Source of the DNA: Epithemia pelagica
Taxonomy: Eukaryota > Protista > Bacillariophyta
Direction of reading: 5' to 3'
DNA: 64,000 bases
Assembly: GCA_946965045.2 (NCBI GenBank)
Contig: OX337235.1
Location: forward strand, 1 to 64,000
Below, in pieces: positions 1 through 21,057 of this stretch. Numbering within the stretch: the first letter of the stretch is position 1; every line of letters begins with the position of its first letter. The translations under genes were made by a program, and so were the position numbers. The notes under the pieces were generated by a model. The model searched no databases. It was not told the DNA's origin and saw only the letters and a list, made by a program, of their open reading frames with translations.

Positions 1-512
1 CCTAACCCTAACCCTAACCCTAACCCTAACCCTAACCCTAACCCTAACCCTAACCCTAACCCTAACCCTAACCCTAACCCTAACCCTAACCCTAACCCTA
101 ACCCTAACCCTAACCCTAACCCTAACCCTAACCCTAACCCTAACCCTAACCCTAACCCTAACCCTAACCCTAACCCTAACCCTAACCCTAACCCTAACCC
201 TAACCCTAACCCTAACCCTAACCCTAACCCTAACCCTAACCCTAACCCTAACCCTAACCCTAACCCTAACCCTAACCCTAACCCTAACCCTAACCCTAAC
301 CCTAACCCTAACCCTAACCCTAACCCTAACCCTAACCCTAACCCTAACCCTAACCCTAACCCTAACCCTAACCCTAACCCTAACCCTAACCCTAACCCTA
401 ACCCTAACCCTAACCCTAACCCTAACCCTAACCCTAACCCTAACCCTAACCCTAACCCTAACCCTAACCCTAACCCTAACCCTAACCCTAACCCTAACCC
501 TAACCCTAACCC
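1..512. repeat. Telomeric tract (CCCTAA)n, ~85 units; left chromosome end
   Basis: Perfect CCCTAA tandem array from base 1 to 512, joined directly to unique sequence ATGGTTTTGCCC at 513. Confidence 0.99.
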
Positions 513-2899
513 ATGGTTTTGCCCGATCCACAAGGTTGAAGCATAAGTTTATGTCTTCCCGGTGAATTGGTGCACATATCAATTGCTGTTTCTTGATTGC
601 CTCGGAAAGTTGCCTCTTCATTACCCAACAACAATCGTAATGCTTCTAACCGATGCTGACGGCTTGTTATTGTCAGCTGATGGCATACCGAGTCCATGAT
701 CATACATTTGGTACCGATGTAACGATGAAATCGGGCATAGTAGATCTCATGACTGTTGCTCACGCGTGTCTGGTAGTTGGACATTGCAGTCTGTTGGGAG
801 TGCTTACTCAACTCACTCAATGCTGTTGAAGAGACCAATGCCTGACTGTTGCTGTCTGGAAAGAGCAAGTTCACAAGAGAAGTCCAGAACTGTCGAACAA
901 CCACCAAACCAGGACGACTATCCAAGCTGAAAATCTCTTGGGCAACATCCTCAAAGAAAAACCTCCGGTCATTACCATATTGTGGAAAAAATCTCCTTGC
1001 ATTGGGCCCATTCCAAACTTTCAGCACCACAACTCTGAAGAGAAATAGACACCTTGCTATGATCCGAGGCATCTTGTGTTCAACGGGGGGGGGGGGGGGG
1101 GTGGGTTGATCATAAGCTTGCAGTTTGGGTTGTTTACGACTCGGTGCAGAAACATATAAATCTTGGTAGTTTGTATTTTTCCACCGAAGCTGAGTCACAT
1201 CGAGACAATGGACCTCTGAGAACCGATCTGCACCACAGCCAAAACCATGGATGGCAAATTCCAACAAGGCAGTTAGTCGTTCGAACTGACTTTTCACCAC
1301 TTCCTTGCATTCCAAATCTTGTGTGTTGGTACCATCTGGCAGCGATCCCAAACCCTTGGACCACTCCACAATAGTCAAGTCACCAACTAAGCAGAGGAAT
1401 TTCTCGTATGCCTTTCCGACAAAGCATGCATCAAAAATACCATGGGCCTTTTCCACAACCGAAGGAACGACCTTAGACCAATGTGCTTTTTGGAATGCAT
1501 GTCCGTCAATAATGATATTGAAGAACTCATCGACCACAACCTCCCTTTTAGGAGGCTTCTCTTGATATTGCTTCCTCAAAGAATAAATCTTAGGACAGAG
1601 AAAGTGTATTGTAGGACAATGTCTGTACCGTTCCATGACCTGCTCCACCAACTTGCCCTGCCCATCGTAGTATTTTAAGCCAGCCGCAACCCCACAGCGA
1701 AGCAGATGTAAAAGGTCAGCTAGAAAGAGATGAAAGAAGACATGAGATTTGAACAACCAAGTATATTCATTGACAGGGGGAAAGGGGGACTCACCGAGTT
1801 CTTGAGCGGCAACTCCACATGATTTCAACCTCAAGCCATTCTTCGTCTTAGTGAACAACCTCTGCCGAGAGAACAGTAACACTACCCCTGAGTCGGACCA
1901 ACCAGAAATCTCACTGTCGAGTACCAACTCTGTCAGGAGTGACCCAAGAACACAATTTTGGAATGCAGTGTCCACAGAGAATCCATCACCTTCAACCTGG
2001 CGGCAAAAATAGTCCCATCTCTTCCACTGCCTCTGATGCAGGAAACACAAGAGAGAGAGGAGTAGAGGTTTCACTCGTTTGTCATAATCATGTCGATGGC
2101 TGAAATTCCATGAGTGATCCACATCACCATCATGGAAAGCAAACTTAGCAATCCGACTCCGAATGTCTGCTGGAATCCCCATTACGATCGAAGCCATCCT
2201 GTCCAGAAGGTAACAACCAACCTGATAGAGTCGGTTGATTGCAGTGTTATTTCCTCTCTTATGATACTCGGCTTCAAACATAATGCCTTGTTCAATGTCT
2301 CCAAGGGCATTCTCCAACGTGCCAGGAATCATATTACTCAGTACATCGGGCCACCTTCCTAAAGTGTTGCTTGGATGCAATAATGGTTCAATCAAACTTG
2401 CAAACTCGTTGGGTAACCTGCTGCGGGGCAGCGGCATGGTGAATATTGAATTCTCAACTTGAATTATTGGGGTCCAGTCGGTTTCTTGCTGCATGGTTTC
2501 TCTTTGGGGCCTTGGCATGAAGCATCCACACTTCAGCTTGAGGAAAGTCTTGGCAATGACTTTGGCACTAGCGCAACAACCAGCAACGTGCTTCTCGCAC
2601 AAAAGCTTCACATGAAACATCTTGTCACAGTCACTACAGAAATACTTGATTCTTGTATCATTTGACTCATGAATGAAACAATCAAACGGTTGGTTGTTGG
2701 CATTCTCCACAAGAGTGTGTATTTTGTTACCAAGATGTCTCCCAGGAAAGCGAAAGGACACCCCATGAATTTTGGAGCAGGTCTTGGCGTGGCGGGCAAG
2801 ACACTTCATGTTTGCTCGGAAACCACCACCACAGAGCTTACAGACCAAGCCACAGGGTGTGGCAAAGTCCACAAGCCCCAAGTAATTGTCAAACTCCAT
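506..2899 (-). CDS. Telomere-linked Zn-finger/tyrosine-recombinase-like/RecQ-like helicase fusion protein, copy 1, truncated by the telomere just after Walker A
   Basis: First ATG at 2899 (the track start at 2926 is TTG). N-terminal CxxC..H..C..H and CxxC..F..K..C..H zinc-finger-like motifs. YR-like catalytic order GADRFSE (R ~1223), RKQPK, VVRQFWTS (~893), LSKHSQQTAMSNY (H ~800, Y ~773). Then helicase Q-motif FRGNQ and Walker A PCGSGKT. The stop codon TAG (506-508) lies in the telomere. Confidence 0.75.
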   Translation of the reverse strand: MEFDNYLGLVDFATPCGLVCKLCGGGFRANMKCLARHAKTCSKIHGVSFRFPGRHLGNKIHTLVENANNQPFDCFIHESNDTRIKYFCSDCDKMFHVKLLCEKHVAGCCASAKVIAKTFLKLKCGCFMPRPQRETMQQETDWTPIIQVENSIFTMPLPRSRLPNEFASLIEPLLHPSNTLGRWPDVLSNMIPGTLENALGDIEQGIMFEAEYHKRGNNTAINRLYQVGCYLLDRMASIVMGIPADIRSRIAKFAFHDGDVDHSWNFSHRHDYDKRVKPLLLSLLCFLHQRQWKRWDYFCRQVEGDGFSVDTAFQNCVLGSLLTELVLDSEISGWSDSGVVLLFSRQRLFTKTKNGLRLKSCGVAAQELGESPFPPVNEYTWLFKSHVFFHLFLADLLHLLRCGVAAGLKYYDGQGKLVEQVMERYRHCPTIHFLCPKIYSLRKQYQEKPPKREVVVDEFFNIIIDGHAFQKAHWSKVVPSVVEKAHGIFDACFVGKAYEKFLCLVGDLTIVEWSKGLGSLPDGTNTQDLECKEVVKSQFERLTALLEFAIHGFGCGADRFSEVHCLDVTQLRWKNTNYQDLYVSAPSRKQPKLQAYDQPTPPPPPVEHKMPRIIARCLFLFRVVVLKVWNGPNARRFFPQYGNDRRFFFEDVAQEIFSLDSRPGLVVVRQFWTSLVNLLFPDSNSQALVSSTALSELSKHSQQTAMSNYQTRVSNSHEIYYARFHRYIGTKCMIMDSVCHQLTITSRQHRLEALRLLLGNEEATFRGNQETAIDMCTNSPGRHKLMLQPCGSGKTMG

Positions 2900-3257
2900 G
2901 GTGGCTGTTGTCGTTCCTATGGTCAAAATAGGTTTTGGACGTATGACCCTTTGCAGCCAAAAAAGAGGCCCTAAAGAGGGTCATTCACCTCAAAAACTGA
3001 AAAGGCCCTAACACCAGAGATCATTCACCTCAAAATCTTTGAGCGACAAGAAGGAATATGGTTTACTATGGAGAGTTAATGTAGGTTTGCAAATCGACCT
3101 TCTTGTGGTCGAAATCGACCTTTTTGTGGTCGCACTAAAATTTCGCACGCAACAATACAGTGATTCAAAATTGACCTTTTTGTGGTCGCGCATGTGATTC
3201 TACAGAATGAACTTAGTGCGCACGACAAAAAGGTCGATTTCTAGCAAAACCCTTAGG
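513..3257. repeat. Subtelomeric duplicated block, copy 1 (matches 4270-7009)
   Basis: Direct repeat at offset 3757/3753/3752. Differences seen: a few substitutions (e.g. 2567, 2794, ~2886, ~2936), poly-G 17 vs 13, and a 1-bp indel near 3126. Identity ends exactly at CCTTAGG. Confidence 0.97.
3091..3240. promoter_or_regulatory. Cluster of AAATCGACCTTTTTGTGGTCG-like motifs (3 direct + 1 inverted) at the element end; candidate protein-binding sites
   Basis: Copies at 3091-3111, 3112-3132 and 3168-3188, inverted copy at ~3221-3240, 10 bp from CCTTAGG (3251). Also present in copy 2 (~6843-6992). Function is inferred. Confidence 0.5.
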
Positions 3258-3375
3258 CCCAAAGAAGGGTCATTTCACACAAAAATCTGACCCAGTCGCA
3301 CTTGTAGTGACGGGAAATGAAACTAGTCGAGCTAGGACTAACTAATAAGCATGGGCATAGGTATGACTAGAATAG

Positions 3376-3505
3376 GGCTGTTCTAGTGGGCTGTTCTGCA
3401 GTGGGACAGCAGGCTGTTCTGCAGTGGGACAGGGCACTTCTGCAGTGGGACAGAGGGCGATTCTGCAGTGGGACAAGTGGGATGGGGGCTGTTCTGCAGT
3501 GGGAC
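3376..3505. repeat. Minisatellite with TTCTGCAGTGGGAC core x5
   Basis: Core at 3394, 3417, 3438, 3461 and 3492, with variable 7-17 bp linkers. Confidence 0.9.
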
Positions 3506-3791
3506 GCTAGAGTCTACGTAGGCCTACGGACAGGCACTTTCTCCTTAGGGTGTCACAATTGTAGCATCTAAACATGACAAGCCAATGCCCTGATTGGAAC
3601 GGATCTTCTTCACAGGCCGTCTCTGGGATGGAGATGGCGTTCCAGGCCCATTGTTGGTAGCCATTGCTGGTTTCCTCGTGTGCATGGAACAGAGGAAGAG
3701 ACATAACCAGCCGACTCTCAAGCAAAAGCAAGGATGGGCCTCTTTGCAAGAGTCATAATTCATGAAACAACAATGACCTTTTGTTGGGCCA

Positions 3792-3849
3792 ATTGAGGTT
3801 TTCAGGTGGAGATGTTGGTCCTATTGAGGTTTTCAGGTGAAGATGTTTG
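3792..3849. repeat. 31-bp tandem duplication (ATTGAGGTTTTCAGGTG.AGATGTT)
   Basis: Two copies starting at 3792 and 3823. Confidence 0.85.
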
Positions 3850-3996
3850 GCGCGAAGGGGCACGCAGGCGAGCTTTTCGCGCCAAAGAATGGGGGAACAA
3901 CTAAGAGTGCGGTAATGGTTGGTAATCAATGAAATTAAGGACTGATATTGAATATGAGTGCTTAGAAATTAGACTTGAGCGGGGCATAGATATTCT

Positions 3997-4096
3997 GTGC
4001 TCATCTGCACAAGGGGCAGTGCTCTTTTGCAACAAAAGGCATATATATCAGTGCTCATATGCACAGATACTATAGCCCCTTGTGCTCATATGCACA
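3997..4096. repeat. GTGCTCATATGCACA-like motif x4
   Basis: Copies at 3997, 4019 (degenerate), 4051 and 4082. Confidence 0.8.
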
Positions 4097-4121
4097 CGTT
4101 CAAATCCTACGGTGTCTAGTA

Positions 4122-6652
4122 CTAAAGACACCCAAAAAAGGCAAATATCCTTAGGGCCTTGACTTTGACCATTTGATAGCTAGCCAAGAAGTTGTAGGGA
4201 ACAAGAAACATGTTGGTCGAAGTCTTCAGTCCTCGAATGGATTCCACCACACAACGCACCAAGATGTTCATGGTTTTGCCCGATCCACAAGGTTGAAGCA
4301 TAAGTTTATGTCTTCCCGGTGAATTGGTGCACATATCAATTGCTGTTTCTTGATTGCCTCGGAAAGTTGCCTCTTCATTACCCAACAACAATCGTAATGC
4401 TTCTAACCGATGCTGACGGCTTGTTATTGTCAGCTGATGGCATACCGAGTCCATGATCATACATTTGGTACCGATGTAACGATGAAATCGGGCATAGTAG
4501 ATCTCATGACTGTTGCTCACGCGTGTCTGGTAGTTGGACATTGCAGTCTGTTGGGAGTGCTTACTCAACTCACTCAATGCTGTTGAAGAGACCAATGCCT
4601 GACTGTTGCTGTCTGGAAAGAGCAAGTTCACAAGAGAAGTCCAGAACTGTCGAACAACCACCAAACCAGGACGACTATCCAAGCTGAAAATCTCTTGGGC
4701 AACATCCTCAAAGAAAAACCTCCGGTCATTACCATATTGTGGAAAAAATCTCCTTGCATTGGGCCCATTCCAAACTTTCAGCACCACAACTCTGAAGAGA
4801 AATAGACACCTTGCTATGATCCGAGGCATCTTGTGTTCAACGGGGGGGGGGGGGTGGGTTGATCATAAGCTTGCAGTTTGGGTTGTTTACGACTCGGTGC
4901 AGAAACATATAAATCTTGGTAGTTTGTATTTTTCCACCGAAGCTGAGTCACATCGAGACAATGGACCTCTGAGAACCGATCTGCACCACAGCCAAAACCA
5001 TGGATGGCAAATTCCAACAAGGCAGTTAGTCGTTCGAACTGACTTTTCACCACTTCCTTGCATTCCAAATCTTGTGTGTTGGTACCATCTGGCAGCGATC
5101 CCAAACCCTTGGACCACTCCACAATAGTCAAGTCACCAACTAAGCAGAGGAATTTCTCGTATGCCTTTCCGACAAAGCATGCATCAAAAATACCATGGGC
5201 CTTTTCCACAACCGAAGGAACGACCTTAGACCAATGTGCTTTTTGGAATGCATGTCCGTCAATAATGATATTGAAGAACTCATCGACCACAACCTCCCTT
5301 TTAGGAGGCTTCTCTTGATATTGCTTCCTCAAAGAATAAATCTTAGGACAGAGAAAGTGTATTGTAGGACAATGTCTGTACCGTTCCATGACCTGCTCCA
5401 CCAACTTGCCCTGCCCATCGTAGTATTTTAAGCCAGCCGCAACCCCACAGCGAAGCAGATGTAAAAGGTCAGCTAGAAAGAGATGAAAGAAGACATGAGA
5501 TTTGAACAACCAAGTATATTCATTGACAGGGGGAAAGGGGGACTCACCGAGTTCTTGAGCGGCAACTCCACATGATTTCAACCTCAAGCCATTCTTCGTC
5601 TTAGTGAACAACCTCTGCCGAGAGAACAGTAACACTACCCCTGAGTCGGACCAACCAGAAATCTCACTGTCGAGTACCAACTCTGTCAGGAGTGACCCAA
5701 GAACACAATTTTGGAATGCAGTGTCCACAGAGAATCCATCACCTTCAACCTGGCGGCAAAAATAGTCCCATCTCTTCCACTGCCTCTGATGCAGGAAACA
5801 CAAGAGAGAGAGGAGTAGAGGTTTCACTCGTTTGTCATAATCATGTCGATGGCTGAAATTCCATGAGTGATCCACATCACCATCATGGAAAGCAAACTTA
5901 GCAATCCGACTCCGAATGTCTGCTGGAATCCCCATTACGATCGAAGCCATCCTGTCCAGAAGGTAACAACCAACCTGATAGAGTCGGTTGATTGCAGTGT
6001 TATTTCCTCTCTTATGATACTCGGCTTCAAACATAATGCCTTGTTCAATGTCTCCAAGGGCATTCTCCAACGTGCCAGGAATCATATTACTCAGTACATC
6101 GGGCCACCTTCCTAAAGTGTTGCTTGGATGCAATAATGGTTCAATCAAACTTGCAAACTCGTTGGGTAACCTGCTGCGGGGCAGCGGCATGGTGAATATT
6201 GAATTCTCAACTTGAATTATTGGGGTCCAGTCGGTTTCTTGCTGCATGGTTTCTCTTTGGGGCCTTGGCATGAAGCATCCACACTTCAGCTTGAGGAAAG
6301 TCTTGGCAATGACTTTGGCCCTAGCGCAACAACCAGCAACGTGCTTCTCGCACAAAAGCTTCACATGAAACATCTTGTCACAGTCACTACAGAAATACTT
6401 GATTCTTGTATCATTTGACTCATGAATGAAACAATCAAACGGTTGGTTGTTGGCATTCTCCACAAGAGTGTGTATTTTGTTACCAAGATGTCTCCCAGGA
6501 AAGCGAAAGGACACCCCATGAATTTTGGAGCAGGTCTTGGCGTGGCAGGCAAGACACTTCATGTTTGCTCGGAAACCACCACCACAGAGCTTACAGACCA
6601 AGCCACAGGGTGTGGCAAAGTCCACAAGCCCCAAGTAATCGTCAAACTCCAT
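4122..6652 (-). pseudogene. Zn-finger/YR/RecQ-like fusion, copy 2; frameshifted at the poly-G tract (13 G) and truncated after helicase motif Ia
   Basis: ORFs 4814-6679 and 4122-4829 together reproduce copy 1. The reading extends past Walker A to a motif-Ia-like FLVPYNFLASYQ, then loses helicase character at CCTTAGG (4149-4155). The frameshift may be a homopolymer sequencing error. Confidence 0.7.
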
Positions 6653-7009
6653 GGTGGCTGTTGTCGTTCCTATGGTCAAAATAGGTTTGGGACGTATGAC
6701 CCTTTGCAGCCAAAAAAGAGGCCCTAAAGAGGGTCATTCACCTCAAAAACTGAAAAGGCCCTAACACCAGAGATCATTCACCTCAAAATCTTTGAGCGAC
6801 AAGAAGGAATATGGTTTACTATGGAGAGTTAATGTAGGTTTGCAAATCGACCTTCTTGTGGTCGAAATCGACCTTTTTTGGTCGCACTAAAATTTCGCAC
6901 GCAACAATACAGTGATTCAAAATTGACCTTTTTGTGGTCGCGCATGTGATTCTACAGAATGAACTTAGTGCGCACGACAAAAAGGTCGATTTCTAGCAAA
7001 ACCCTTAGG
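4270..7009. repeat. Subtelomeric duplicated block, copy 2
   Basis: Near-identical to 513-3257. Confidence 0.97.
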
Positions 7010-7040
7010 GTTCTTGATAACCAATCTAACAGAAAGCCCG

Positions 7041-7740
7041 AAACCGCTTTAATTGTAATAGCGTGATTGGAATGAAGGACAGAGCTGAGTGAAACAAGCA
7101 ACAATCAGACAGATGCCCCAAGCCGCTTTAATTGTAGCGTGGTGATTGGAATGGCAGAGCTGCAAGATAGTGCAAGTGTCAAAGATAGGACAAATGTCGA
7201 CAATATTTCGAATGCTCTGGTGGTCGTTCTTCTTCTTGGGTTCCTCTTCTTCTTGTTTTCCTGTTGTAGCGGTTTTGGAGTGAAGGTTGTGGTTGAAAGG
7301 AAGCAAGCAACAATCAGACAGATGCCCCAAGCCGCTTTAGTTGTAGCGTGATTGGAATGGCAGAGCTGCAAGATAGTACAAGTGTCAATGTCTCGAATGC
7401 TCTGGCCGTGCTTGAGTTCCTCTTCTTCTGGTGCAGCGGTTTTGGAGTGAAGGTGGCTGAAGAGGAAGCAAGGAACAAAAAGGTGGCTGAAAAGGAACCA
7501 AGCAACAATCAGACAGATGCCCCAAGCCGCTTTAATTGTAGCGTGATTGGAATGGCAGAGCTGTTAGGTTGGTGAAAGAAGTTGGATAGGTGAAAGGATT
7601 GAAAAGGGAATCTCGGCAGAGAGAAAGCAAGCAACAAAAAGGTGGCTGAAAAGGAACCAACCAACAATCAGACAGATGCCCCAAGCCGCTTTAATTGTAG
7701 CGTGATTGAATGGCAGAGCTGTTAGGTTGATGAAAGAAGC
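7041..7740. repeat. Degenerate tandem array with a conserved ~65-bp core (CAACAATCAGACAGATGCCCCAAGCCGCTTTAATTGTAGCGTGATTGGAATGGCAGAGCTG), 4 full + 1 partial copies
   Basis: Cores at ~7099, ~7308, ~7503 and ~7662, partial at ~7044. The 95-145 bp intervening segments are related to each other. Confidence 0.9.
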
Positions 7741-8479
7741 TGGATAGATAATGGGATTGAACAGGGGAATCTCGATAGCGTTGGGTGATCGATTGCTGTT
7801 GTTGCTGCTGCTGCTGTTGTTGTTTGTTGTGGTGTGTTGGGTGGAGGTGGAGGGAGATGAATGAGCATCGATTCTGGTGGTTGTTGATTGTTGAATGACT
7901 AGTATGCTAGGTTGTTCGGTTTTATTCGATGGATCAGAGTGTCGAGTTGGTAATCCCCGCGGTTTGGGTGATTGGGAAGGAGGATCCATCTGAGACATTC
8001 TTTGGGACATCCATGTGCGTCAGTCTTTCTGGCAGCTGCTGTGTGATGTGGTGGGAGTGGAAATTCGTGATTCAAAGGTGAGGGGACAGACGCTTGCGCA
8101 TGAGGGTTGCGTCATGCGCGTCTCGGGGGGGGGTCAAGCGCGCCAGATAGTTGTAGTGCGCATTATCGGAGTGTGGCGCGCGTTATTCGTGGTTTGATCG
8201 CGGGCTTGTGCGCATTAAAATTGTTGCATGCGCGTGATAGTTAGCTCGATCTCTAGAACTAGCTAGAGAAATGTGCATTGTTAGACCTAGATTTGCAGAT
8301 TTAGTTGGGAAAGCAGGATTATAGTTAAAAACTGCGCATATAAAAATAAACTGCGCATAAAAAATTTTAATTCGGCGAATTTTTTCTAGAAATTCGCTTT
8401 TGGGGGTGGAAATCAAGCGCCAGGGCCCATTTCCCTCCTTAGATGTACGGCCACCCCATCATGATCCGACCATCACATG

Positions 8480-8960
8480 CTTCATATCGGTACCATGGCA
8501 GTGCATTGTGAGGGGCACAGTGCATGCGGGCCATTCTAGGAAATGACCAATACAGTGACGCTGTAATACGGCACAATAGGAGACCATGATGGCGTGAACA
8601 TACATTAGAGTTGCTGTTTTGCTATCAATACACTGTGTAACTACTACTGTGATGTGTATTGTGTACCAATAGGTGTCCAAACAATGCAAGATAAGAGCCA
8701 TATAGTTCATTTGAGTTGCTTCGTTCGAAATGGCAAGACGTCGCTTCCGTATCTCTGCCACGAGGCATGGCGCCTATGAGTCTGATGCATAATAGCCTTA
8801 ACCTTTAAATTTTGGTGATGCCGATGCATTCTGCACTATTGGTTTGAGGTCTATGACTAGGTAGACAGGTTTCACGAGTCCAAATAGGTGCACAACAACC
8901 TGTGCAACACCATGGCCCGTGTTGTTATCGTGGTGGAGGAAATGAGATATGCCGGCCGAC
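8480..8960 (-). pseudogene. Possible highly degenerate RecQ C-terminal remnant (motifs V/VI, Zn-binding region)
   Basis: Across shifting minus frames: STT..GHGVAQVVVHLFG, then RGRDTEATSCHF (compare GRAGRDG..A.C.L), then QRHCIGHFL..C...HC. Weak, by eye only. Confidence 0.25.
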
Positions 8961-9177
8961 TGGAAACAGGTTATTTTTGGCAAATAGGTATGGGGGTGGC
9001 TCAGAGAAATTACACCCTATAAGCCACCCCCGCTAGGGGGTATCCTTAGGATTATCATTGAGACAAAACTCCTTTAGCGTTAGTCCCTATCCATGTTGTC
9101 ATGTTACAATGGTCATATTGAATATAATCGCGCGGGAGAAAAAATGGCGCACCAGAGCCCGGCTTAATTGGTTTTTC

Positions 9178-9284
9178 AGCTCAAGTGCAAAGTGGCATAT
9201 CAAAACCAAAGCTCAAGTGCAAAAGGGGCCATACCTAGCTGTACCCACGGGAGCTCATATGCAAAATATGCAGCTCAAGTGCAA
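9178..9284. repeat. AGCTCAAGTGCAA / AGCTCATATGCAA motif x4
   Basis: Copies at 9178, 9210, 9252 and 9272; related to the motif at 3997-4096. Confidence 0.8.
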
Positions 9285-9939
9285 CCCGTAGAAAGCTACG
9301 GGCTCTGGTACAAAAACTAGAATCTAGACCTAAATTTCCTTAGGGTCATCGTCCTGGCTGCGGCCACTGTTGTTGGTGTAAATAGATGCGCTGTTGGGGG
9401 AAAGCCCACACATCAAAAGCTTGTTGGGCCACATGGGTCAATGGGACAATCGGTCGCCGAAAACTTGTACATACTGACTGACAAACTGTACGAGCTCGTA
9501 AAGGGGATTTACCCAAGCAATCCTATTGGGCATGGGGGCTTGCCAAACTTGCGATGGCTCCCATCCATTCTGTGTCCATTTTATTTGGTTGGGTATTTCA
9601 AGGCAGTTCCAAGACTTTCCCTTTCGTGTTGTGGCGTATCGTGCTTCTCTTGTGCGTGTCTATGCGTCCGACGACAGCAAAGCAGCAGCAATAACAACAA
9701 CAAGAACCTATTGCCGGTGGAGAAACCGACAAGGTTTATACTTGATTGGTAGAGGACATTGAATCCGGAGACGACGACGCCAGGCGTTGATTTGTTCAAG
9801 GGAAACGACCGCTCAATTTGTAGCAGTCTTTCGAGTTCATCGAGTCGGCAACGACAACAACAGTACCAACATTGCTCTGTGACACATACGTCTCATAACA
9901 ACCGCGGCCAACAATTTTACTACAATCACGCAAAAAACA

Positions 9940-12900
9940 ATGACTGCGGCGGTGGAGACGTCTACCGTTTCTCCTCCGGCGACTCCAAAAGCCAACAAGA
10001 AGAAAAAGGTCAGAAAGTCATTGTCGCTGACAGAAGAATCCATTGAAAATACCATTGAATCTCCCAATCGCTCCAAAAAGGAAACGACTACTACCAAGTC
10101 CAATAAGGAACGCAAGGAGAAAAAGGATTCGAAACTAAAAACGGGCAGCAATCACGGCAAAAACACTACTAAGGACGAATCACCATCCGAATCGCCGACA
10201 CGTTCCAAGGATGGAGATTCTTCGCCTCCTTCCTCCAAAACGTCCTCCCGCGACGACAATCCACTCAAAGCATCCACCAAACAATCAAAACCCAAAATTC
10301 GTCGCAGTCGTAGTGTGAAACGCATGGGAGGACGAGAATCATCCAAAAAGCTGTCTTCCTCGTCCAAAACCAAGTCCGACAACGACCCAGAGGATGACCA
10401 TAAGGCACGTGCTCGACGAAGTCGATCGCAACCAGCCCCTCGCAAGAAGCTTATCTCAAGCCTCACCAATAGTAGCTCCTCGAAACCATCTTCCGAAAAC
10501 AGTCTGCGCAAGTCCTCTTCGAGAAAATCAACGAGTGAAGCGACAAACAACAGGGACGACAAAGAATCAGAAATATCGCCGCCGTCTTCTCCAGGAAAGC
10601 GTGATGCTAAAGGTACCGACAAATCATCAAAATCATCCAAAGCATTGGGTCCATCGATTCCCGACATGAATTTGTCGAAAGACCCAATCAGCCTTTCTCC
10701 AAAAGACGACAAGGCAGAGCAGAAGAATATCAAGGATGGCAACGGCAAAGAGTCGAGCGATGCGGATGGCACCTCCGCCGTCGCAAAAAGCCGCAGTCCC
10801 CTTGCCAAGAAAGAATCACTCAAATCCAAAACTGATTCAGTGTCACCATCTCAATCACCAAAGAAATTACGACGGGCTCGATCCAGTAGTCCAGGTGGTG
10901 CGGTCTCCAAAAACAAACTACGGAGTGGATCCAAGAAAGATGGAACCACCAGCAGGACTAAGAAAGCGGATCGCAGATCCAAAATGTCACAAAGCATGTA
11001 TGCCTCCACATCATGTTTGCCCAGTATGGGCGACAATGGTCAGGAGGACCGTCGGGACGACAAGGATCATCATCCCTTGCATTCCTCCTTCTCTCAAATG
11101 ACGCCGTGGTATCAAGAGAAATCTCAAAACAGTACTACCACTACTCCTACCGTCGATACGGACCTGATCCTTTCTCCCACACGCAGCGTCACCAGCCCCA
11201 AAACCAAAAAGAAAAAGAAAAGCAAGTCTTTGGATCAATTGAAAGCAGAGTTGTCGATTGGGCATCTGTCTCTAGTCGACGGCAGCCCAGAAGAAGAAAA
11301 AAAGACGGAAAAGAGACGGAGTAGGGGACGGAGTACCAACCGGCGATCTCATGCCACCAATGCTAAGGACGATGATGGCGATGACCCTGACAGAGATACG
11401 ACCAAGAAGAAAAAGAAAAAGAAAAAAGAAAAGACCGACGACGAAGATGGCAAAGATAAGAAGAAAAAAGATAAAAAGAAGAAGAAGATTAAAAGAGTCA
11501 AGGAGGAGAAAGCCAAAGACGCGGACACAACATTGGAGGACTCCATTCACTTGATGATTGATGACGACGAGAATGATGATCATGTCTTTGATGATAATGT
11601 CTCACCAGTCCAAGCCCCGCTGCAAGAACAAGACGAACCACAACCGAAACGATCTTCGTTAACGAACCGCACCGCGAAATCCCCAAAACCAAACAAGAAT
11701 ATGAAGAGGTCTGGCAGCTCTCATAGTAGTGGAACGAGCAGCAAAACACCCAAAACTTCCAGCCCCAAAAAGAAAATCGACAAGGCACTCCGAAATAGCA
11801 GCCATGGAAAGAAAGAAGATCCTCCTGCTCCAATATCCACGGATGTCCGGGATTCACCGGAATCCAAACAACAGTCTAGCCAAGCCATTGCCGACGAATC
11901 AAACACCACTACGACCAAGGCTTCTACTACGTTGATGATAGAGTCTTTGTCTTCTCCTCCTACTTCACCGTCATCCGCCAAACGATCCAAGTCCGAACAA
12001 TCTACTCTTGAATCCTCTCCGAAACAAACGTCGTCACCCTTTTCCGCTAAAAACAGCACACAAACGCTGCCAAGTGGCTCATCCATGTCGATGGAAACAA
12101 ACGGCACGGCGTTTCCATCTTCTTCATCGCCTTCTTCTTCTTCTCCTCTACCGGCCAGCAAATGCGTTTCGGACCCTGATAAGAACCAGACACCTTCAGA
12201 GTCGCCTTCAGGCTCTTCTTCGGTCGAAATCGTAGGAAAAGAGAATGCACAACAGCAACAGGAAATGCGAAATCCTGAGGACAACTCGCCAGTGGTCGAC
12301 GAGCACACAGAAGAACTGGATTCTGATGATAAACTCGCAAAACCGCTCTCGTCTTCAAACAACGTGACGCTTACATCAAGAAAGGACGATGATGTAGGAG
12401 ACGCAGAGTATCGGACGCCTGATGAAAGCATTACGAGCACATCTGAATCAATGTTCAAGGATATAGAACCAACGGTGTCAAGTGAATTCACAGCAACTGG
12501 ATCACTGAGTGATAAAACCTCAACAGAATTACATGAATCCCATGCCACAGCACAAGAATCCTTCCAAGAAACACTCCAAACAGAAGAAGAAAGCAAGAAA
12601 GATGACACTGGCATGCAGAGTGGTCAGGATTCGCCTTCGATAGCAAACTCGTTCTCGCCAAGCACGGACGAGGGCAAGATAGTTGACGAAGACAAGGTAT
12701 CACCATCGATGGACGAAACTCTGGAGGAACCAGTTCGCGAGGACAAGCAAGTGCCATCGATAGAGGACCTAGAAGAGAGACCAGTTAGCGAGGACCAGCA
12801 ATCACCATTGATAGACGACGTTCGACAGGAAGCAGTTGACGAAGACAAGGAATCACCGTCGATGGACGACATTTCAGAGGCCCTAGAGGAGAAACCACTT

Positions 12901-15297
12901 AGTGAGAACCAGCAGCTACTATCAATAGACGACCTTGCAGAGGAAACCAAGGAATCACCGTCGATAGATGATAGTCAGGAGGAACCAGTTAGCGAGGACC
13001 ACCCACCTCTCTCCGTAGACGACCAAGAAGAGCAACCAGTGAGTGAGGATCAGGAGCTACCATCATTAGATGACCTTCGAGAGGAAGCAGTTGACGAAGA
13101 CAAGGAATCAACGTTGATGGATGAGATTGCTGAAGAACCAGTTAGCGAGGACAAGCAAGCGTCATTGATAGAGGGCCTAGAAGAGAAACCAGTAAGCGGG
13201 GACCAGAAATCTCCATCGAAAGACGACCTTGGAGAGGAAGCAGAGGACGAAGACAAGGAACCATCGTCGATGGATGGCATAGAGGAGGAAGCAGTTAGCG
13301 ATGACAAGCAAGCACCATCGATGGACGACCTACATGACAAACCAGCTACTGAGGCCGAGCAATCACCGTCGATAGACGACGTCCCAGAAGAGCAATCACC
13401 ATCAATAGACGACCTTCATGAGAAAACAACTGACGCGCAAATTATCGAGAATACAACCCTTGTCGTGTCTTCTTCATCGTCATCTCCACCCGAAGAATCA
13501 TTACCCGATGTGGAGGAATCGGCTTTGCGGAACGATTCTTTGTCCTCCGACGGCTCAGGCGCTCGACTTGGTGAAAATGAAGTGGGGAACATTAAACCAT
13601 CTTCTCCCGAAGGCTCAGTACCGGACGACGATAGTATCAGTACCTGCAGTAGCAGCAGTGACGCAGACATTTCGTTCTCGCAACAACGTCTACTCCCTGG
13701 CCGCAAACCACAACGTCTGAATCCACCAGAAAGCCAAACACACCCACGGCACACACGATGGAATTTTGGTCGAGTACATGAGTACTTTGTTCGACCAGAC
13801 GATGCCACGTTTTACAAGAATGAGGACTACATACGAGCTGCTGTCAATTTGCAGCGTTGTATTCGGGGTTGGAGGGCTCGATTGGTTCATCGCCTTCGTG
13901 TTCTGGAATTGACCCTGTCACAGCAAAAGACACTGTTGCGGCAAGCCAAGCTCCAAGTCACTGAAGAAATGAATAAGGAGAGGCAGACTGTGCTGAAAGA
14001 AGCCGACACGGAGCGGCGACAAATGCGGAAGGAGTATTCTGCGCAATCTACCAAGGTCGCGGGAGAATCCTTGCGCATTCAAAACGTACAATTGGAAAAA
14101 GAAAATCAAGATTTGCAAATTGAAATTCAACGATGCAAAGCGATCAATGGCCGACTTGTCAAAAAAGCTGCGAGTAAAACAACCGACACAGCCAAAGACA
14201 ATGGGACTCCCGAAAGTAAGGAAAAGAACAAGGACGAAAGCAAGGCAGATCGTAAGGAAAAGAAGCTCCAGCGACAGATATCACAATTGCAAGATCAACA
14301 AAAGCAGTTGAGATTGGTGGAAAACATGTATCAAGAACGTACCATTCAACTGGTTCATCGCATCCAAGAATACATGGAACACTATTGTCCTGCCGAACAT
14401 ACCATGAAACTGAGCTACCAAAAGTTTGCGGGGAGAGTGGTAGACTTGCTCGAGTCGCATGAAGCAAATGACGATGACGACATGTATTTTTACAAGGAAT
14501 CCGAAGAAGATCGAATGGAACAATTAACGGAATGGGTCATCTCTGCAGTGGTGGCGATCCCCGACAATACCCTGCCGTATCCCTCCAGCGAGATTTTGCA
14601 CATCAACATTGAGGAGTACAATAGCAAGAAAATGACAAAGAATCAAGACATTGGTAATGGGCAAGCCACTGAAAAGTCACCTACTTCGACCAAGAGTATT
14701 CACGGTTTGTCGGTTCCACTTTTGTCACCGTCCATCCCGTCCAAGTTTTTGTTGCCGTCACCATCAACTCCCGTTTCCTCCAATTCACCCAGTGCTCTGG
14801 CATCACCTTCGCATACATCCCCCGGGTTCTCTCCCTCTTCTCCAGGTGGGTTTGAAAAATCCTTGGCCAAAGCCTTGCCTTCCGCGCCCTTGCCGTTGTC
14901 CCCGGATCCCCACCAAGTCCGGCGACGACGAGCCGGAGGGATCCCTTCTCCCCGAATGCCTCAGCGACGAGCTATGGCAGGGCGACCGAGACCATCCGTC
15001 CCAGCCCCTTCTCTCGTGGACGCAAATGACGAGGACGCGGCATCGGACTATACCGAAGAGAGTGTCCACTCGGACTTTACCGAAGAAAGTGTATCGTCTT
15101 CGTCATCGTCCGACTATACCGAAGAAAGTATCGATAAGAGTGACAACGACAGTGACAGTGAGGAAGAAGAAGAAATGGAAGAATTGGAGATTGTCGAAGA
15201 AGAAGAAGAGGTTGAGGAGGATGACAATGACGCACCGACAGACACGGCGAAAACGACACGGGGATCCTCTGTAGTAATGGAAACCATTCCAGAGTAA
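9940..15297 (+). CDS. Large low-complexity protein (1785 aa) with Lys/Ser-rich N-terminus, acidic repeats, IQ motif and coiled coil
   Basis: Uninterrupted 5.36-kb ORF. IQ-like LQRCIRGWRAR at ~13852-13884, followed by a heptad-rich region. Confidence 0.85.
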   Translation: MTAAVETSTVSPPATPKANKKKKVRKSLSLTEESIENTIESPNRSKKETTTTKSNKERKEKKDSKLKTGSNHGKNTTKDESPSESPTRSKDGDSSPPSSKTSSRDDNPLKASTKQSKPKIRRSRSVKRMGGRESSKKLSSSSKTKSDNDPEDDHKARARRSRSQPAPRKKLISSLTNSSSSKPSSENSLRKSSSRKSTSEATNNRDDKESEISPPSSPGKRDAKGTDKSSKSSKALGPSIPDMNLSKDPISLSPKDDKAEQKNIKDGNGKESSDADGTSAVAKSRSPLAKKESLKSKTDSVSPSQSPKKLRRARSSSPGGAVSKNKLRSGSKKDGTTSRTKKADRRSKMSQSMYASTSCLPSMGDNGQEDRRDDKDHHPLHSSFSQMTPWYQEKSQNSTTTTPTVDTDLILSPTRSVTSPKTKKKKKSKSLDQLKAELSIGHLSLVDGSPEEEKKTEKRRSRGRSTNRRSHATNAKDDDGDDPDRDTTKKKKKKKKEKTDDEDGKDKKKKDKKKKKIKRVKEEKAKDADTTLEDSIHLMIDDDENDDHVFDDNVSPVQAPLQEQDEPQPKRSSLTNRTAKSPKPNKNMKRSGSSHSSGTSSKTPKTSSPKKKIDKALRNSSHGKKEDPPAPISTDVRDSPESKQQSSQAIADESNTTTTKASTTLMIESLSSPPTSPSSAKRSKSEQSTLESSPKQTSSPFSAKNSTQTLPSGSSMSMETNGTAFPSSSSPSSSSPLPASKCVSDPDKNQTPSESPSGSSSVEIVGKENAQQQQEMRNPEDNSPVVDEHTEELDSDDKLAKPLSSSNNVTLTSRKDDDVGDAEYRTPDESITSTSESMFKDIEPTVSSEFTATGSLSDKTSTELHESHATAQESFQETLQTEEESKKDDTGMQSGQDSPSIANSFSPSTDEGKIVDEDKVSPSMDETLEEPVREDKQVPSIEDLEERPVSEDQQSPLIDDVRQEAVDEDKESPSMDDISEALEEKPLSENQQLLSIDDLAEETKESPSIDDSQEEPVSEDHPPLSVDDQEEQPVSEDQELPSLDDLREEAVDEDKESTLMDEIAEEPVSEDKQASLIEGLEEKPVSGDQKSPSKDDLGEEAEDEDKEPSSMDGIEEEAVSDDKQAPSMDDLHDKPATEAEQSPSIDDVPEEQSPSIDDLHEKTTDAQIIENTTLVVSSSSSSPPEESLPDVEESALRNDSLSSDGSGARLGENEVGNIKPSSPEGSVPDDDSISTCSSSSDADISFSQQRLLPGRKPQRLNPPESQTHPRHTRWNFGRVHEYFVRPDDATFYKNEDYIRAAVNLQRCIRGWRARLVHRLRVLELTLSQQKTLLRQAKLQVTEEMNKERQTVLKEADTERRQMRKEYSAQSTKVAGESLRIQNVQLEKENQDLQIEIQRCKAINGRLVKKAASKTTDTAKDNGTPESKEKNKDESKADRKEKKLQRQISQLQDQQKQLRLVENMYQERTIQLVHRIQEYMEHYCPAEHTMKLSYQKFAGRVVDLLESHEANDDDDMYFYKESEEDRMEQLTEWVISAVVAIPDNTLPYPSSEILHINIEEYNSKKMTKNQDIGNGQATEKSPTSTKSIHGLSVPLLSPSIPSKFLLPSPSTPVSSNSPSALASPSHTSPGFSPSSPGGFEKSLAKALPSAPLPLSPDPHQVRRRRAGGIPSPRMPQRRAMAGRPRPSVPAPSLVDANDEDAASDYTEESVHSDFTEESVSSSSSSDYTEESIDKSDNDSDSEEEEEMEELEIVEEEEEVEEDDNDAPTDTAKTTRGSSVVMETIPE
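12676..13420 (+). repeat. Intragenic degenerate repeat, ~15 units of 13-20 aa (EEPVSEDKQSPSIDDL-like)
   Basis: Recurring GAGGAACCAGTTAGCGAGGAC...CCATCGATAGACGAC units. Confidence 0.85.
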
Positions 15298-15652: not shown

Positions 15653-17356
15653 TTATTCGGTGGCAGGCTTGGGCTTTTTGCTGGTAGCTGCATCATTTGT
15701 GGACGATGGTGGCGGTGCTTTGCGTTTGGATCGTACCATCAAGGTGGTTTGCGCCGTGGCCGACAGAGCGGTGGCCGTGGCCGATCCAAAGGCTACGGAT
15801 TCCTCGGCCGGTGGGGCACTGTCGTCGTTTGGGTCGTCGGGAACGGCAGCCGCAGCAGCCACAGTGGCGGCGGCCGCCGCCGTGATTTCGGATTTGAGCG
15901 CCGTGACTTGATGCAATCCTTCTTCCGAGACCAAGGCCTCATTGACAATTTCTTGAATGTCATTCAGTAATTCCAGGACGGAATCATCCTTGTCGTTGTC
16001 GTCCTGTTGTTGTTGATCCGTGTTGGTGTTGGATTGAGTCTGTTGGACATGGTCTCGTAAGGCTTGCACATGCGAACGCGCTTGTTGCCAAACTTCTTGT
16101 GTGGTGGGCGTGGCCCCAGCGGACGACGACGACGAGGACACTTTTTGATCGTCCTTTGTGGTCTTGTTGTCGTGGGGTACCAAGACGTTGGGAAGAACCG
16201 GAAGAGTCCTTTCTGCAGTACTGCTACCACCAAGAGCCGAACAGGCATGTTGCGTCAAGAGTTGCGCGCAAGAGGCATAATGTTGCAAGGACGCTTGTCG
16301 CCATTCGTGCAATTGATCTGGTAACACGACAGGCTCCTGTTCCTCGTCGGTGGGTTCCACAGCTGCAGCTGCTGCCGCCGCAGTTGGTTTGGCCTCCTTC
16401 TCATCCTCCTTGGCAGTAGTCGTATTGGAATCGTCTCCCCGGGTCGATTCGTGTCCGACCAAGAGCGAATAGGTCAAGGCCAATTGGTAATGCACATCGG
16501 CCAGGGATCGGGGTGTCGTTGTCGTTGTAGGATTCTCAGAGGCTTGTTGTTGTTGTTGTTGTCGTAGGGTGAGACAGGACTGATAATTGTCCACGGCCTG
16601 TTGGTATTGTCCATTCAGGCGTTGCAAATCGCCCTGGCGCAACCAAATTTGCGCCAAGTCCAACGACAAGCTTTGCAAAGCGTCACTGTTCTTGTTTGGA
16701 TCGGGTTGTTGTTGCTGCTGCTTGTCTTGAATGTAGCTTTGCAACAAGAGTCGACTGGTATCCAAATGTTCGTAGGCAATTTGCAAATCGTCCACATCCT
16801 CCTCGGGATCTGCCGTTGGTGCTGCTGCTTGTGGTGGTTGCGAGTGGGAGGGCATGACAAAGACCATGTCGCGGACAGTTTGTTCCGCACCATCTTCATC
16901 TTCGTCTTGGTGTTCCTCAGGAGCCGACTCTTCTTGTTCTTGTGGTTGCTGTACTGGATCGTCTGGTTGCTGCTCTTCCATGGAATACAAGAGCGTCGTG
17001 CCGTACAGATAATGAAAGGGTGCCAAGGAGGGATGCAACGAGGCCTCGTCCAACGTCATGTTGCTGCTTATCGTTGTTGCCGTCATGAGACGTTCCAATT
17101 GCGCCTCCAACCCATCGTGCTGAATCAACGACAAGGCGGTTTCATAATCGCCCTGATTCAAGGACTCCTTGGCTTGTCGATAGACCGTCGATGCCTTGGA
17201 CGATTCGTACGTATCCAGTGGAGGAGCTGGCGGGTTTGTGGTCGAGGTAGACGAGTCCTGGGTGGTTCCGGCAGATGGCTTGTGGTGAACCATTGCGTCT
17301 GACGGTGTGGTTTGCGTCGTGGTAGTGGGAACGGTCGATGCCGGTGGGGCTGCCAT
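15653..17356 (-). CDS. NASP: NASP/Sim3-like SHNi-TPR histone H3-H4 chaperone
   Basis: LAPFHYLYGTTLL, acidic interruption, DDLQIAYEHLDTSRLL, LAQIWLRQGDL...AVDNYQSCLTLR, RSLADVHYQLAL, C-terminal NLS MVRSKRK. Probable start MAAPP at 17356. Confidence 0.85.
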   Translation of the reverse strand: MAAPPASTVPTTTTQTTPSDAMVHHKPSAGTTQDSSTSTTNPPAPPLDTYESSKASTVYRQAKESLNQGDYETALSLIQHDGLEAQLERLMTATTISSNMTLDEASLHPSLAPFHYLYGTTLLYSMEEQQPDDPVQQPQEQEESAPEEHQDEDEDGAEQTVRDMVFVMPSHSQPPQAAAPTADPEEDVDDLQIAYEHLDTSRLLLQSYIQDKQQQQQPDPNKNSDALQSLSLDLAQIWLRQGDLQRLNGQYQQAVDNYQSCLTLRQQQQQQASENPTTTTTPRSLADVHYQLALTYSLLVGHESTRGDDSNTTTAKEDEKEAKPTAAAAAAAVEPTDEEQEPVVLPDQLHEWRQASLQHYASCAQLLTQHACSALGGSSTAERTLPVLPNVLVPHDNKTTKDDQKVSSSSSSAGATPTTQEVWQQARSHVQALRDHVQQTQSNTNTDQQQQDDNDKDDSVLELLNDIQEIVNEALVSEEGLHQVTALKSEITAAAAATVAAAAAVPDDPNDDSAPPAEESVAFGSATATALSATAQTTLMVRSKRKAPPPSSTNDAATSKKPKPATE

Positions 17357-17930
17357 GGTTGACAAGGATGCTGTCAGCGAACAACGAGAAAAAGGATTGT
17401 GGCCCTGGATGGAGGGATTCGTTGCTCCTGCGCCATGATTCGAGGCACGACGGGCGTGAGGAGGAGAGGAGAGCCGTCGTGTTTTTGCTATGTGGGAATG
17501 AAATGCGCCCAGAACAATGGCTGTGCAGGCGCGAGTCAGCAGGCTCTCAAGGCCCGCCCGAAAATCACACCGCGGGGAGTTCTTCGGGGCGAACTTGCAT
17601 TCCCAACCCTCCACGTGGAAGATGATCGAAAAAGGAAGCGAGAACCAAGCATCGATCCAATAGAGGTGAAGGCTTCACTCTTCACAAACCAGAACACATG
17701 ACAATCCAACATCCAACGGAGAGTGTTGTCAATGAAACACATCTCCAATGGACTTCCCTCGGATTCCGAATGTGCCTTTTTTCGCAACTGGACAACCAAA
17801 AATGCGAATCCAACAATGAACTCTCTCCAAAGGTGAAAAGGAAGCTCTCGATGCTTCCTCATCGATCCATCTCACAATCCATTTGGACTCATAATAAAAA
17901 CAAGAACCACCAAATCAACAACACAAAATC

Positions 17931-18869
17931 ATGAAGAACGTCAAAAACCACCACCACAATGATGCTTCGACGGGACGTCGCCTCCTGGGCTGGATGCTGG
18001 TCGCCACCGCCATGCTGCTACAAACGACAAGGACAAGTGCTGCAGATCGTGGACTTCGTGTCGGATCTCGTCCTCGAAACTCTACCCACCAAGAGGACGA
18101 GACTTTCACCACCAACACCACGACAAGCAACGACACTACGGTAGATGTGGATGGCACCATTGCGGTACGTATCTACGGGTTGAAAGAATGGCCGGGTGTG
18201 CCTGCTTGTCTCATGGAGCCGCCTTCTTTCTCTTCTTTGTCTCGTTTGAACTGCTTGTTTGTTTGCTTAACTGTCTCTTATTTTTGTGGTTGTGTTGTTG
18301 TGGTGGTTGCGAATGGCGACACCATGTTCCCCCAGTGCGGCTGCGCGGGCCGTCAAGATCCCATTCCCTTTTATGTGGCGGGACCCGACAGGATTACCTT
18401 TGCCCAGGCACGGGTCCTGGCTCCTCCCGATGTGGACGGGGCCACTTGTGTCTTGGCCCGAGCACCGGCGACCGAGTACCAACGCATTCAAATGGCCGTC
18501 ACCTGTCCCTATTCGGAAAAGTGCTGGTTGGCCGCATTGGCCACACAAGGCTTTGTCGAAACACCTGTCTGCAACAGTCGACGATCCGACACGTACAATG
18601 AAACGGCCTGTCGCGAGCTTCGACTCGTCTTTCGCAATTTGGACCATGACAATGCGGCGGATGAATCGTCGGTGATGATTCCAGTCGAGTATTGGGCCGA
18701 CGGAGAACCCAGCAACAAGAACAATGACAATCAATTCCGTCTCGTGATAAATTCCTATGCCTCTGGCTCGGGTGGATGGTTGTTTGCCGTCAATGGGCAA
18801 GAGATTCACAAACCACTCTTTCAGTGCTGTCATGACGATATACCGTCCACCTGTCCCTTTTGGGTGTAG
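17931..18869 (+). CDS. Putative secreted Cys-rich protein; probable in-frame intron 18165-18335
   Basis: Signal-like LLGWMLVATAMLLQTTRTSA. Conserved with a paralog at 21058-21591. GTACGT donor at 18165, CTTAAC branch-like site, CCCCAG acceptor at 18335 (171 bp, phase 0). Confidence 0.65.
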   Translation: MKNVKNHHHNDASTGRRLLGWMLVATAMLLQTTRTSAADRGLRVGSRPRNSTHQEDETFTTNTTTSNDTTVDVDGTIAVRIYGLKEWPGVPACLMEPPSFSSLSRLNCLFVCLTVSYFCGCVVVVVANGDTMFPQCGCAGRQDPIPFYVAGPDRITFAQARVLAPPDVDGATCVLARAPATEYQRIQMAVTCPYSEKCWLAALATQGFVETPVCNSRRSDTYNETACRELRLVFRNLDHDNAADESSVMIPVEYWADGEPSNKNNDNQFRLVINSYASGSGGWLFAVNGQEIHKPLFQCCHDDIPSTCPFWV

Positions 18870-20640: not shown

Positions 20641-20659
20641 ATACAAGGACACATTGCAC

Positions 20660-21055: not shown

Positions 21056-21057
21056 GG

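Follow-up and report, generated by a model that had tools for sequence, protein, structure and literature searches.

Two copies of one gene lie beside the telomere at the start of contig OX337235.1 of the diatom Epithemia pelagica (GCA_946965045.2), coding for two zinc fingers, a conserved N-terminal region and a recombinase-fold domain that runs directly into the beginning of a helicase. We analysed the first 64,000 nucleotides of this contig (the window) and consider it rather probable that the DNA immediately inside the telomere is a stack of chromosome-end elements of the telomere-linked helicase (TLH) and Y' type, in which the recombinase-like domain makes the joints between successive elements at the seven-nucleotide sequence CCTAAGG; the joining itself is something we infer. 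This reading draws on the predicted structure of the domain, on its placement in a widespread protein family, and on the anatomy of the joints in the window and at other chromosome ends.

The middle domain of the protein (aa 453-740 of the copy next to the telomere, copy 1; positions 707-1570, minus strand) was modelled by AlphaFold (AF2) with a predicted local distance difference test score (pLDDT) of 92.8 and a predicted template modelling score of 0.89, and a longer fragment (aa 396-806) with a pLDDT of 86.9. When the domain model was compared with 48,161 PDB representatives using VIA-align, members of the tyrosine recombinase/topoisomerase IB superfamily took all of ranks 1-27, with Z falling from 9.3 to 5.1, and no unrelated fold reached Z 5. 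These 27 chains comprise archaeal and bacterial Xer proteins, Cre, phage, integron and Tn1549 integrases, type IB topoisomerases, Flp, Ndc10 and SSV1 Int, and the best Foldseek matches also fall nearly all within the superfamily. The original prediction had been that this region is a tyrosine recombinase with its catalytic residues in canonical order. The fold is borne out by the model, and the residues do follow one another as expected: R568 (codon 1223-1225) in GADRFSE, K598 (1133-1135), R678 (893-895) in VVRQFWTS, and H709 (800-802) together with Y718 (773-775) in SKHSQQTAMSNY, all on the minus strand. What has to be corrected is the assignment of VVRQFWTS as an HxxR motif, for it holds the second arginine and no HxxR histidine. 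Across the family the residue there is L, T, I or V and in no case H, and because the recombinase His-II is missing throughout, the pentad is of the topoisomerase-IB type.

Conservation agrees with this picture. In a 46-sequence alignment only R, K, R and H are invariant before the helicase, with Y present in at least 90% of the sequences, and alignment to the family hidden Markov model (HMM) finds R-K-R-H-Y kept in 147 of 152 relatives, as had been expected of the R, H and Y residues if the assignment was right. The distance from H to Y is nine residues, a spacing that also occurs in XerD, Cre, lambda Int and vaccinia topoisomerase. Pairwise profile alignment with hhalign places the conserved residues opposite Cre R173/K201, lambda Int R311/H333/Y342 and the LRH...GHS...Y residues of HP1 Int, a pairing that is statistically weak, and the language-model neighbours of the domain alone are, after fungal sets, Phage_integrase, NDC10_II and protelomerase. 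On the model, then, the middle domain is predicted to fold as a tyrosine recombinase/topoisomerase IB with an intact putative R-K-R-H-Y active site.

The best structural matches to the domain in Swiss-Prot are eight S. cerevisiae Y'-Help1 paralogs (E 7e-5 to 5e-3) and S. pombe Tlh1, with alignments that fall just upstream of their helicases, and XerC/XerD rank after them. Among AlphaFold DB clusters, two uncharacterised proteins come first (E 4e-16 and 1e-11; to judge by their accession prefixes, they may be from Thalassiosira pseudonana) and are followed by many fungal 'DNA 3'-5' helicase' proteins that match at the same relative position; the language-model neighbours of the protein are fungal. 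Fungal chromosome ends have been known to carry TLH and Y' genes since the 1990s, and we know of nobody who has explained how these genes reach the ends or what the 'TLH domain' does. The TLH proteins of fungi and Monosiga have two N-terminal C2H2 motifs, a 'TLH domain' of ~250 aa before the helicase, and RecQ motifs, and a 2024 preprint gives the function of that domain as unknown (bioRxiv 10.1101/2024.02.27.582403). The diatom gene resembles them in being the last before the telomere, in its multi-copy subtelomeric distribution with frequent truncated paralogs, and in having two N-terminal zinc motifs and a ~250-290-aa domain directly before a RecQ-type helicase. It differs in its diatom host, its C-terminal CCHC knuckles, its stacking via a fixed CCTAAGG joint, and in our reading of the domain as a catalytic one of the tyrosine-recombinase/topoisomerase-IB kind, carrying an R-K-R-H-Y pentad, the likeness to the fungal proteins being one of fold level only. 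With the Y' elements (Y'-Help1, YRF1) it has in common subtelomeric tandem arrays with a large helicase open reading frame (ORF) and a pre-helicase region that is a structural match. Y' copies carry short telomere-repeat tracts between them and amplify by homologous recombination in survivors, whereas the diatom joints consist of a single inverted telomere unit at a fixed position. Because the same fold precedes the helicase in Y'-Help1 and Tlh1, we regard the element as a diatom branch of the TLH family, whose 'TLH domain' looks like a recombinase in the predicted structure. Fungal TLH genes had originally been cited as a separate precedent; the structure search instead indicates a shared pre-helicase domain, and the recombinase-helicase fusion would therefore be a trait of the family and not a diatom novelty. 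The accompanying claim that no such system had been described in diatoms stands, in that our literature search found no paper on diatom subtelomeric RecQ genes, nor any joining 'telomere-linked helicase' or YRF1 with 'tyrosine recombinase'.

An exhaustive HMMER search collected 193 clusters of relatives, 120 of them with E ≤1e-10. In the full-length members (n=44; 1,150-1,850 aa) a pair of zinc fingers at the N-terminus is followed by the ~290-aa domain, then by a RecQ-type helicase and finally, at the C-terminus, by CCHC knuckles, with Walker A at about aa 600-900, DExH ~113 residues further on and a CCHC knuckle ~350 after that. All 40 helicase regions scanned match Pfam DEAD and Helicase_C, while RecQ_Zn_bind is matched by two members. 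A profile built from the 40 regions finds RECQL5 first (2.5e-23), then E. coli RecQ (1e-17), RECQ1, BLM and WRN, with eIF4A (2e-14) behind all of them. From these scores the helicase of full-length family members is assigned to the RecQ type, and the earlier description of a 'RecQ-like helicase' is upheld for them; it does not extend to the copies in the window, which lack motifs II-VI. Both window copies keep the Q motif and motif I, seen in copy 1 as FRGNQ (Q778) and PCGSGKT (798-804), and the motif Ia that had also been listed (LVPYNFL) survives in copy 2 only. At the other end of the protein, two CxxC-x12-H-x3/4-C zinc-finger motifs (2573-2842, minus strand; aa 29-50 and 97-118) are conserved in position in 12 relatives; in the A-type copy they are C2HC, not C2H2. 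Pfam gives no match for the zinc motifs of copy 1, and Pfam and PDB-sequence searches of its whole 806-aa ORF were blank.

Two further loci were compared with the window. One (L001) is an ENA assembly contig representing a second chromosome end, from the same or a very close organism, whose modules are 98% identical to those of the window and which ends in a (TTAGGG)n telomere; the other (L010) was used as a third. L001 carries a full-length 1307-aa paralog of a second type, called B here to distinguish it from the A-type gene of the two window copies (15723-19646), an inverted 951-aa copy with DEAD, Helicase_C and zf-CCHC matches, and further stumps. Two protein lineages of only ~25% identity share one genome. 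In L001 a ~178-bp satellite fills the 2.7 kb from the full-length 1307-aa gene to the telomere (19688-22386), and the telomere begins at a GGGTTAG already present in the satellite unit.

The window opens with a perfect (CCCTAA)n repeat at 1-511, which is (TTAGGG)n in gene orientation. Both A-type genes lie on the minus strand and point towards it, and in a BLASTN self-comparison of the window the direct copies (512-3257 and 4269-7009) are 99.67% identical over 2,746 columns, differing by four substitutions and two indels, one of 4 nt within a G-run (1085-1088 against 4841) and one of 1 nt; the figure is 99.85% when only substitutions count, in agreement with the ~99.8% given at first sight of the sequence for two near-identical copies adjoining the telomere. 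The ORF of copy 1 (506-2926, minus strand; 806 codons, first ATG at 2899) is cut in its Walker A motif, PCGSGKT (515-535). The telomere was added de novo after ...ACCATG within this ORF, so that the protein ends ...PCGSGKTMG* on a TAG stop supplied by the first telomere repeat. At the same point copy 2 runs on as ACCATGAATATT where copy 1 continues as ACCATGGGTTAGGG, and copy 1 must therefore have been broken inside Walker A and healed by telomere addition. The leader of copy 1 (2927-3257, minus strand) ends at the CCTAAGG start (3251-3257; CCTTAGG on the plus strand) that forms the joint onto the preceding stump. Copy 2 (4156-7009, minus strand) is an A-type module that starts with CCTAAGG at 7003-7009 and consists of a leader, an ORF at 4814-6679, a 4-nt deletion at 4841 and an ORF at 4122-4829, the frame having been shifted by the loss of four nucleotides in a poly-proline tract. 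Its Walker A begins at 4292 and its motif Ia at 4205, and it breaks off 49 residues beyond Walker A, where unrelated DNA adjoins it (distal cut at GCCCT|CTTGG). The length of the poly-proline G-run differs among copies (4 nt shorter in copy 2, 11 nt shorter in contigs of runs X1, X3 and X4, and shorter in the L001 copy), a variation that may stem from a mutational hotspot or from homopolymer read errors.

Neither window copy is predicted to be able to make a helicase. Compared with the A-type copy of L001, the ratio of non-synonymous to synonymous substitution rates (dN/dS) is 0.77 (11 synonymous and 31 non-synonymous changes), and the two copies, which are the same A-type gene, drift almost neutrally. 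Copy 2 was apparently cut by the later joining of other element stumps and copy 1 by breakage and telomerase healing, and both are probably best described as non-functional relics that record additions to this end; they were possibly moved in trans by intact B-type copies. A full-length A-type copy is absent from the window, L001 and L010, where the longest (950 aa) also ends at a CCTAAGG joint. An assembly artefact is an unlikely source of the duplication, given that independent assemblies and contigs join the same module starts to other partners.

The first 9.3 kb inside the telomere form a head-to-tail stack of cut-off modules, each of which starts exactly at CCTAAGG. From the inside outwards these are older modules (9344-7010), copy 2 of the A type, a 610-bp B stump, a 298-bp C stump, copy 1 of the A type and the telomere. 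The two older modules (9051-9344 and 7010-9050, minus strand) have their CCTAAGG at 9338-9344 and 9044-9050; within the latter, at 7057-7774, are repeats of ~200 bp and 159 bp that share the conserved core CAACAATCAGACAGATGCCCCAAGCCGCTTTAATTGTAGCGTGATTG. The B stump (3550-4155, minus strand, ~610 bp) is the leader of a B-type element, with CCTAAGG at 4149-4155 and a cut at ACCCT|TTGG. The C stump (3258-3549, minus strand, ~298 bp), which has CCTAAGG at 3543-3549, was cut at a pseudo-site reading CCTAA and includes a tandem repeat of 23 bp. It represents the end of the 3' trailer, in inverted orientation, of a further element type, and in L001 continues into the inverted gene for the 951-aa recombinase-helicase.

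Every boundary between homology blocks in the window, L001 and L010 falls on CCTAAGG in gene orientation, giving 19 boundary sites (six in the window, seven in L001 and six in L010, of which the one at L010 1221 is possibly a chance match). The number of CCTTAGG sites in the window is not significant on its own, with six found against 3.5 expected and six reached in 13 of 100 shuffles; the signal lies in their placement, all six on one strand, within the first 9.3 kb and exactly on module boundaries, and neither CCTTAGG nor CCTAAGG occurs in the remaining 54.6 kb. The 7-mer, which equals one inverted telomere unit plus G, opens at least six unrelated module starts in both element orientations, and what follows it comes from a small set of fixed starts, among them the A-type leader (in copies 1 and 2), the leader that belongs to the 1307-aa B-type gene, and the third type's 3' trailer in inverted orientation. 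On its other side is the variable truncation point of the previous module. In all eight distinct joints for which an intact reference copy exists the recipient breaks immediately before CC, with the identity extending to CCT in five of the eight and to CCTA in two; by our own calculation chance would produce the CC rule with a probability of about (1/16)^8. Contigs from genomic runs of the same organism leave the window exactly at 3253, 3547 and 4153-4156 and continue as the intact forms, and in these runs the element has high word depth and many alternative junction partners. CCTAAGG is common to lineages with just ~25% protein identity and with leaders that fail to align, which argues for a functional site rather than shared descent. 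At L010 9351 and window 4155, two different chromosome ends, the A-type gene is cut at the identical nucleotide and joined to different B-type leader variants, so that either the pseudo-site (GCCCTCTTGG) has been used more than once or the joint was inherited and conversion followed. Simple interstitial telomere remnants were considered and rejected as the origin of the 7-mers, the unit being inverted and always single copy, as was retroelement-like addition primed by the G-overhang, since the genes point to the telomere and no reverse transcriptase is present.

Beyond Epithemia, the Fistulifera solaris homolog GAX27885.1 (FisN_13Hu001), in which R-K-R-H-Y is intact, is the last gene on an 850-kb contig and is aimed at a (TTAGGG)n telomere 2.3 kb away. 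Together with the window and the second chromosome end of L001, this substantiates the expectation that homologs would be multi-copy and telomere-associated. The sole CCTAAGG in 16.7 kb of this locus lies 3.2 kb upstream of the homolog, directly after the last ordinary gene; a lone 7-mer of this kind is suggestive, not significant. A gene for a RusA-family Holliday-junction resolvase (PF05866, E 4e-14; 6354-6743 of L011, from BDSP01000259.1) abuts that CCTAAGG.

Our preferred reading can be put as a mechanism. A full-length copy, for instance the product of the B-type gene (1307 aa), would use its recombinase-like domain to cut its element at the terminal CCTAAGG, and the cut end would be joined to a CC-containing site or end in the recipient subtelomere. 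This might occur as a site-specific exchange of chromosome ends between the 7-mer and CC pseudo-sites, carrying everything distal including the telomere, or as a topoisomerase-like strand transfer of the element end in which 2-5 bases of pairing are enough for ligation; in either case the CC(T) identity would supply the handful of base pairs on which ligation by enzymes of this class depends. DNA targeting would fall to the zinc fingers, and the RecQ helicase would act on the joint, unwinding or processing it, or would assist in copying the donor. Exposed distal ends would then erode or break until capped by the next element or by telomerase, hence proximal ends that are intact and distal ends that are truncated. 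The original prediction spoke of a self-propagating subtelomeric element. What speaks for this is junction anatomy (a fixed donor end, a CC recipient, distal truncation); the copies in the window are themselves dead stumps.

Several observations weigh against this reading. Against solved recombinases Foldseek gives weak E-values (0.09-2), and nothing is found when the domain alignment is searched as a profile against PDB sequences, so that the case for homology rests on fold and motif pattern, and Ndc10 is a case of this fold without catalysis. One module variant starts with CCCTAAGT instead of CCTAAGG. A single unequal crossover in a 3.75-kb tandem unit could also give the A-B-C-A order, without a separate addition of copy 1, and host microhomology-mediated joining of a linear molecule with a defined end would likewise produce a constant donor end and 2-5 nt of identity on the recipient side. 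Metagenomic contigs with distant homologs (L002-L006, L012-L015) have no telomere repeats and no 7-mer at informative places, and they neither support nor contradict telomere linkage; and searches for sequencing runs returned DNA-assembly-like runs (contigs up to 509 kb) and no RNA runs.

The strongest competing explanation, which we nevertheless hold to be unlikely, is that these genes are a host telomere-maintenance family that is amplified passively, the stack having arisen by break-induced replication and unequal crossover between subtelomeres. The domain and the RecQ helicase would here resolve telomeric recombination intermediates or back up telomerase, as proposed for Y'-Help1 and Tlh1. 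The induction or amplification of TLH/Y' helicases in telomerase-negative survivors (bioRxiv 10.1101/2024.02.27.582403) fits such a role, as do the conservation of the fold from fungi to diatoms and the 3.75-kb A-B-C period, which is compatible with unequal crossover. Neither break-induced replication nor crossover, however, explains why at least six unrelated module types start at one 7-mer or why recipients always break before CC, and the near-neutral decay and predominance of truncated copies are unlike a selected host gene; the coexistence of two lineages ~25% identical in one genome also tells against it. Less probable again is that the host's own end joining attaches a linear extrachromosomal or excised element with CCTAAGG ends through CC/CCT microhomology, the domain serving only in DNA binding (cf. 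Ndc10) or acting elsewhere. Recipient identity that is short and decays, from CC in all joints to CCTA in a quarter of them, is what microhomology joining produces, and modules do attach by either element end. Set against this are the persistence of the catalytic pentad in 97% of 152 diverged members, which argues that its chemistry has been retained, and the fact that some sequence-specific cutter would still be needed to define a linear end; free forms, linear or circular, were not seen, though no search aimed at them was made.

Cryptons resemble the diatom family in being eukaryotic, in encoding an enzyme of tyrosine-recombinase fold and in a short identity between terminus and target (PMC9977147; see also PMC3212892); CryptonF-1_cRei, for example, ends in CACCG and targets CAYCG (PMC9977147). 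The diatom family differs in its fused RecQ helicase, terminal copies and one-sided truncation, and it does not group with Cryptons by sequence, there being no Pfam, PDB or profile similarity to known recombinases and all copies seen being subtelomeric stumps. That the element is an ordinary Crypton-type cut-and-paste transposon with a circular intermediate and a preference for subtelomeric targets like its own terminus is very improbable: the recombinase-fold enzyme and the terminus/target identity fit that model (PMC9977147), but no complete element between two direct sites in unique DNA was seen in the loci compared, the modules, all of them distally truncated, are stacked in the direction of the telomere, no known recombinase family shows sequence similarity, and no RecQ-bearing Crypton is described in the literature searched.

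Type IB topoisomerases (poxvirus, human) and the resolvases TelK, TelA and ResT share the fold (Z 7.3-4.5), and a pentad lacking the recombinase His-II is what topoisomerase IB shows, whereas the diatom domain as a whole scores nearer to Xer and Cre. Assignment to the telomere resolvases is not favoured by the data: their Z is only 4.5-4.8, below those of Xer, Cre and topoisomerase IB, there is no ResT-TelK_cat Pfam match, and the diatom chromosome ends in open TTAGGG repeats, with no hairpin ends seen. Vaccinia topoisomerase cuts at (C/T)CCTT, and the bottom strand of most module starts reads (C/T)CCTTAGG. Since the variant start CCCTAAGT lacks it, we treat this resemblance to the poxvirus target as a curiosity that is maybe coincidental. 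In Drosophila HeT-A/TART and the Athena/Coprina Penelope-like elements there are likewise head-to-tail stacks at chromosome ends, one fixed and one eroded end, and a short telomere-like attachment sequence. The diatom family differs from these in being without reverse transcriptase and in having its fixed end at the 5' side, the opposite polarity to target-primed addition.

The remainder of the window contains genes of a different character. The first gene inside the module stack (9940-15297, plus strand) is a 1785-aa ORF with no Pfam match, which has tandem repeats of 51 nt (17 aa) at 12687-13380 and is strongly skewed towards A over T. Ordinary genes are found from ~20 kb inward (22244-24781, 44820-46808 and 27025-29604), and include those for a 2-oxoglutarate dehydrogenase E1 component, an asparagine synthase and a TPR-repeat protein. 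A very long ORF of 3718 aa at 52672-63828 (minus strand) has no Pfam match at E ≤1e-4.

Taken at its widest, and as a tentative proposal that we would put forward with less assurance than the reading of the stack, the TLH elements as a whole (yeast Y', fungal TLH and the diatom family) may be an ancient and unrecognised class of mobile element, in which a topoisomerase-IB-like tyrosine recombinase, fused to a RecQ helicase, grafts the element and a telomere seed onto chromosome ends at a fixed telomere-like site. Such a class would be a DNA-based counterpart of the telomere-targeting retrotransposons, with a possible role for its enzyme in telomerase-independent end repair. If the domain is a working recombinase or topoisomerase and CCTAAGG its footprint, the way in which these elements spread can be tested directly as a reaction of an enzyme. 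The family would then reach from opisthokonts to diatoms, and eukaryotic DNA elements would have a new means of building or repairing the ends of chromosomes.

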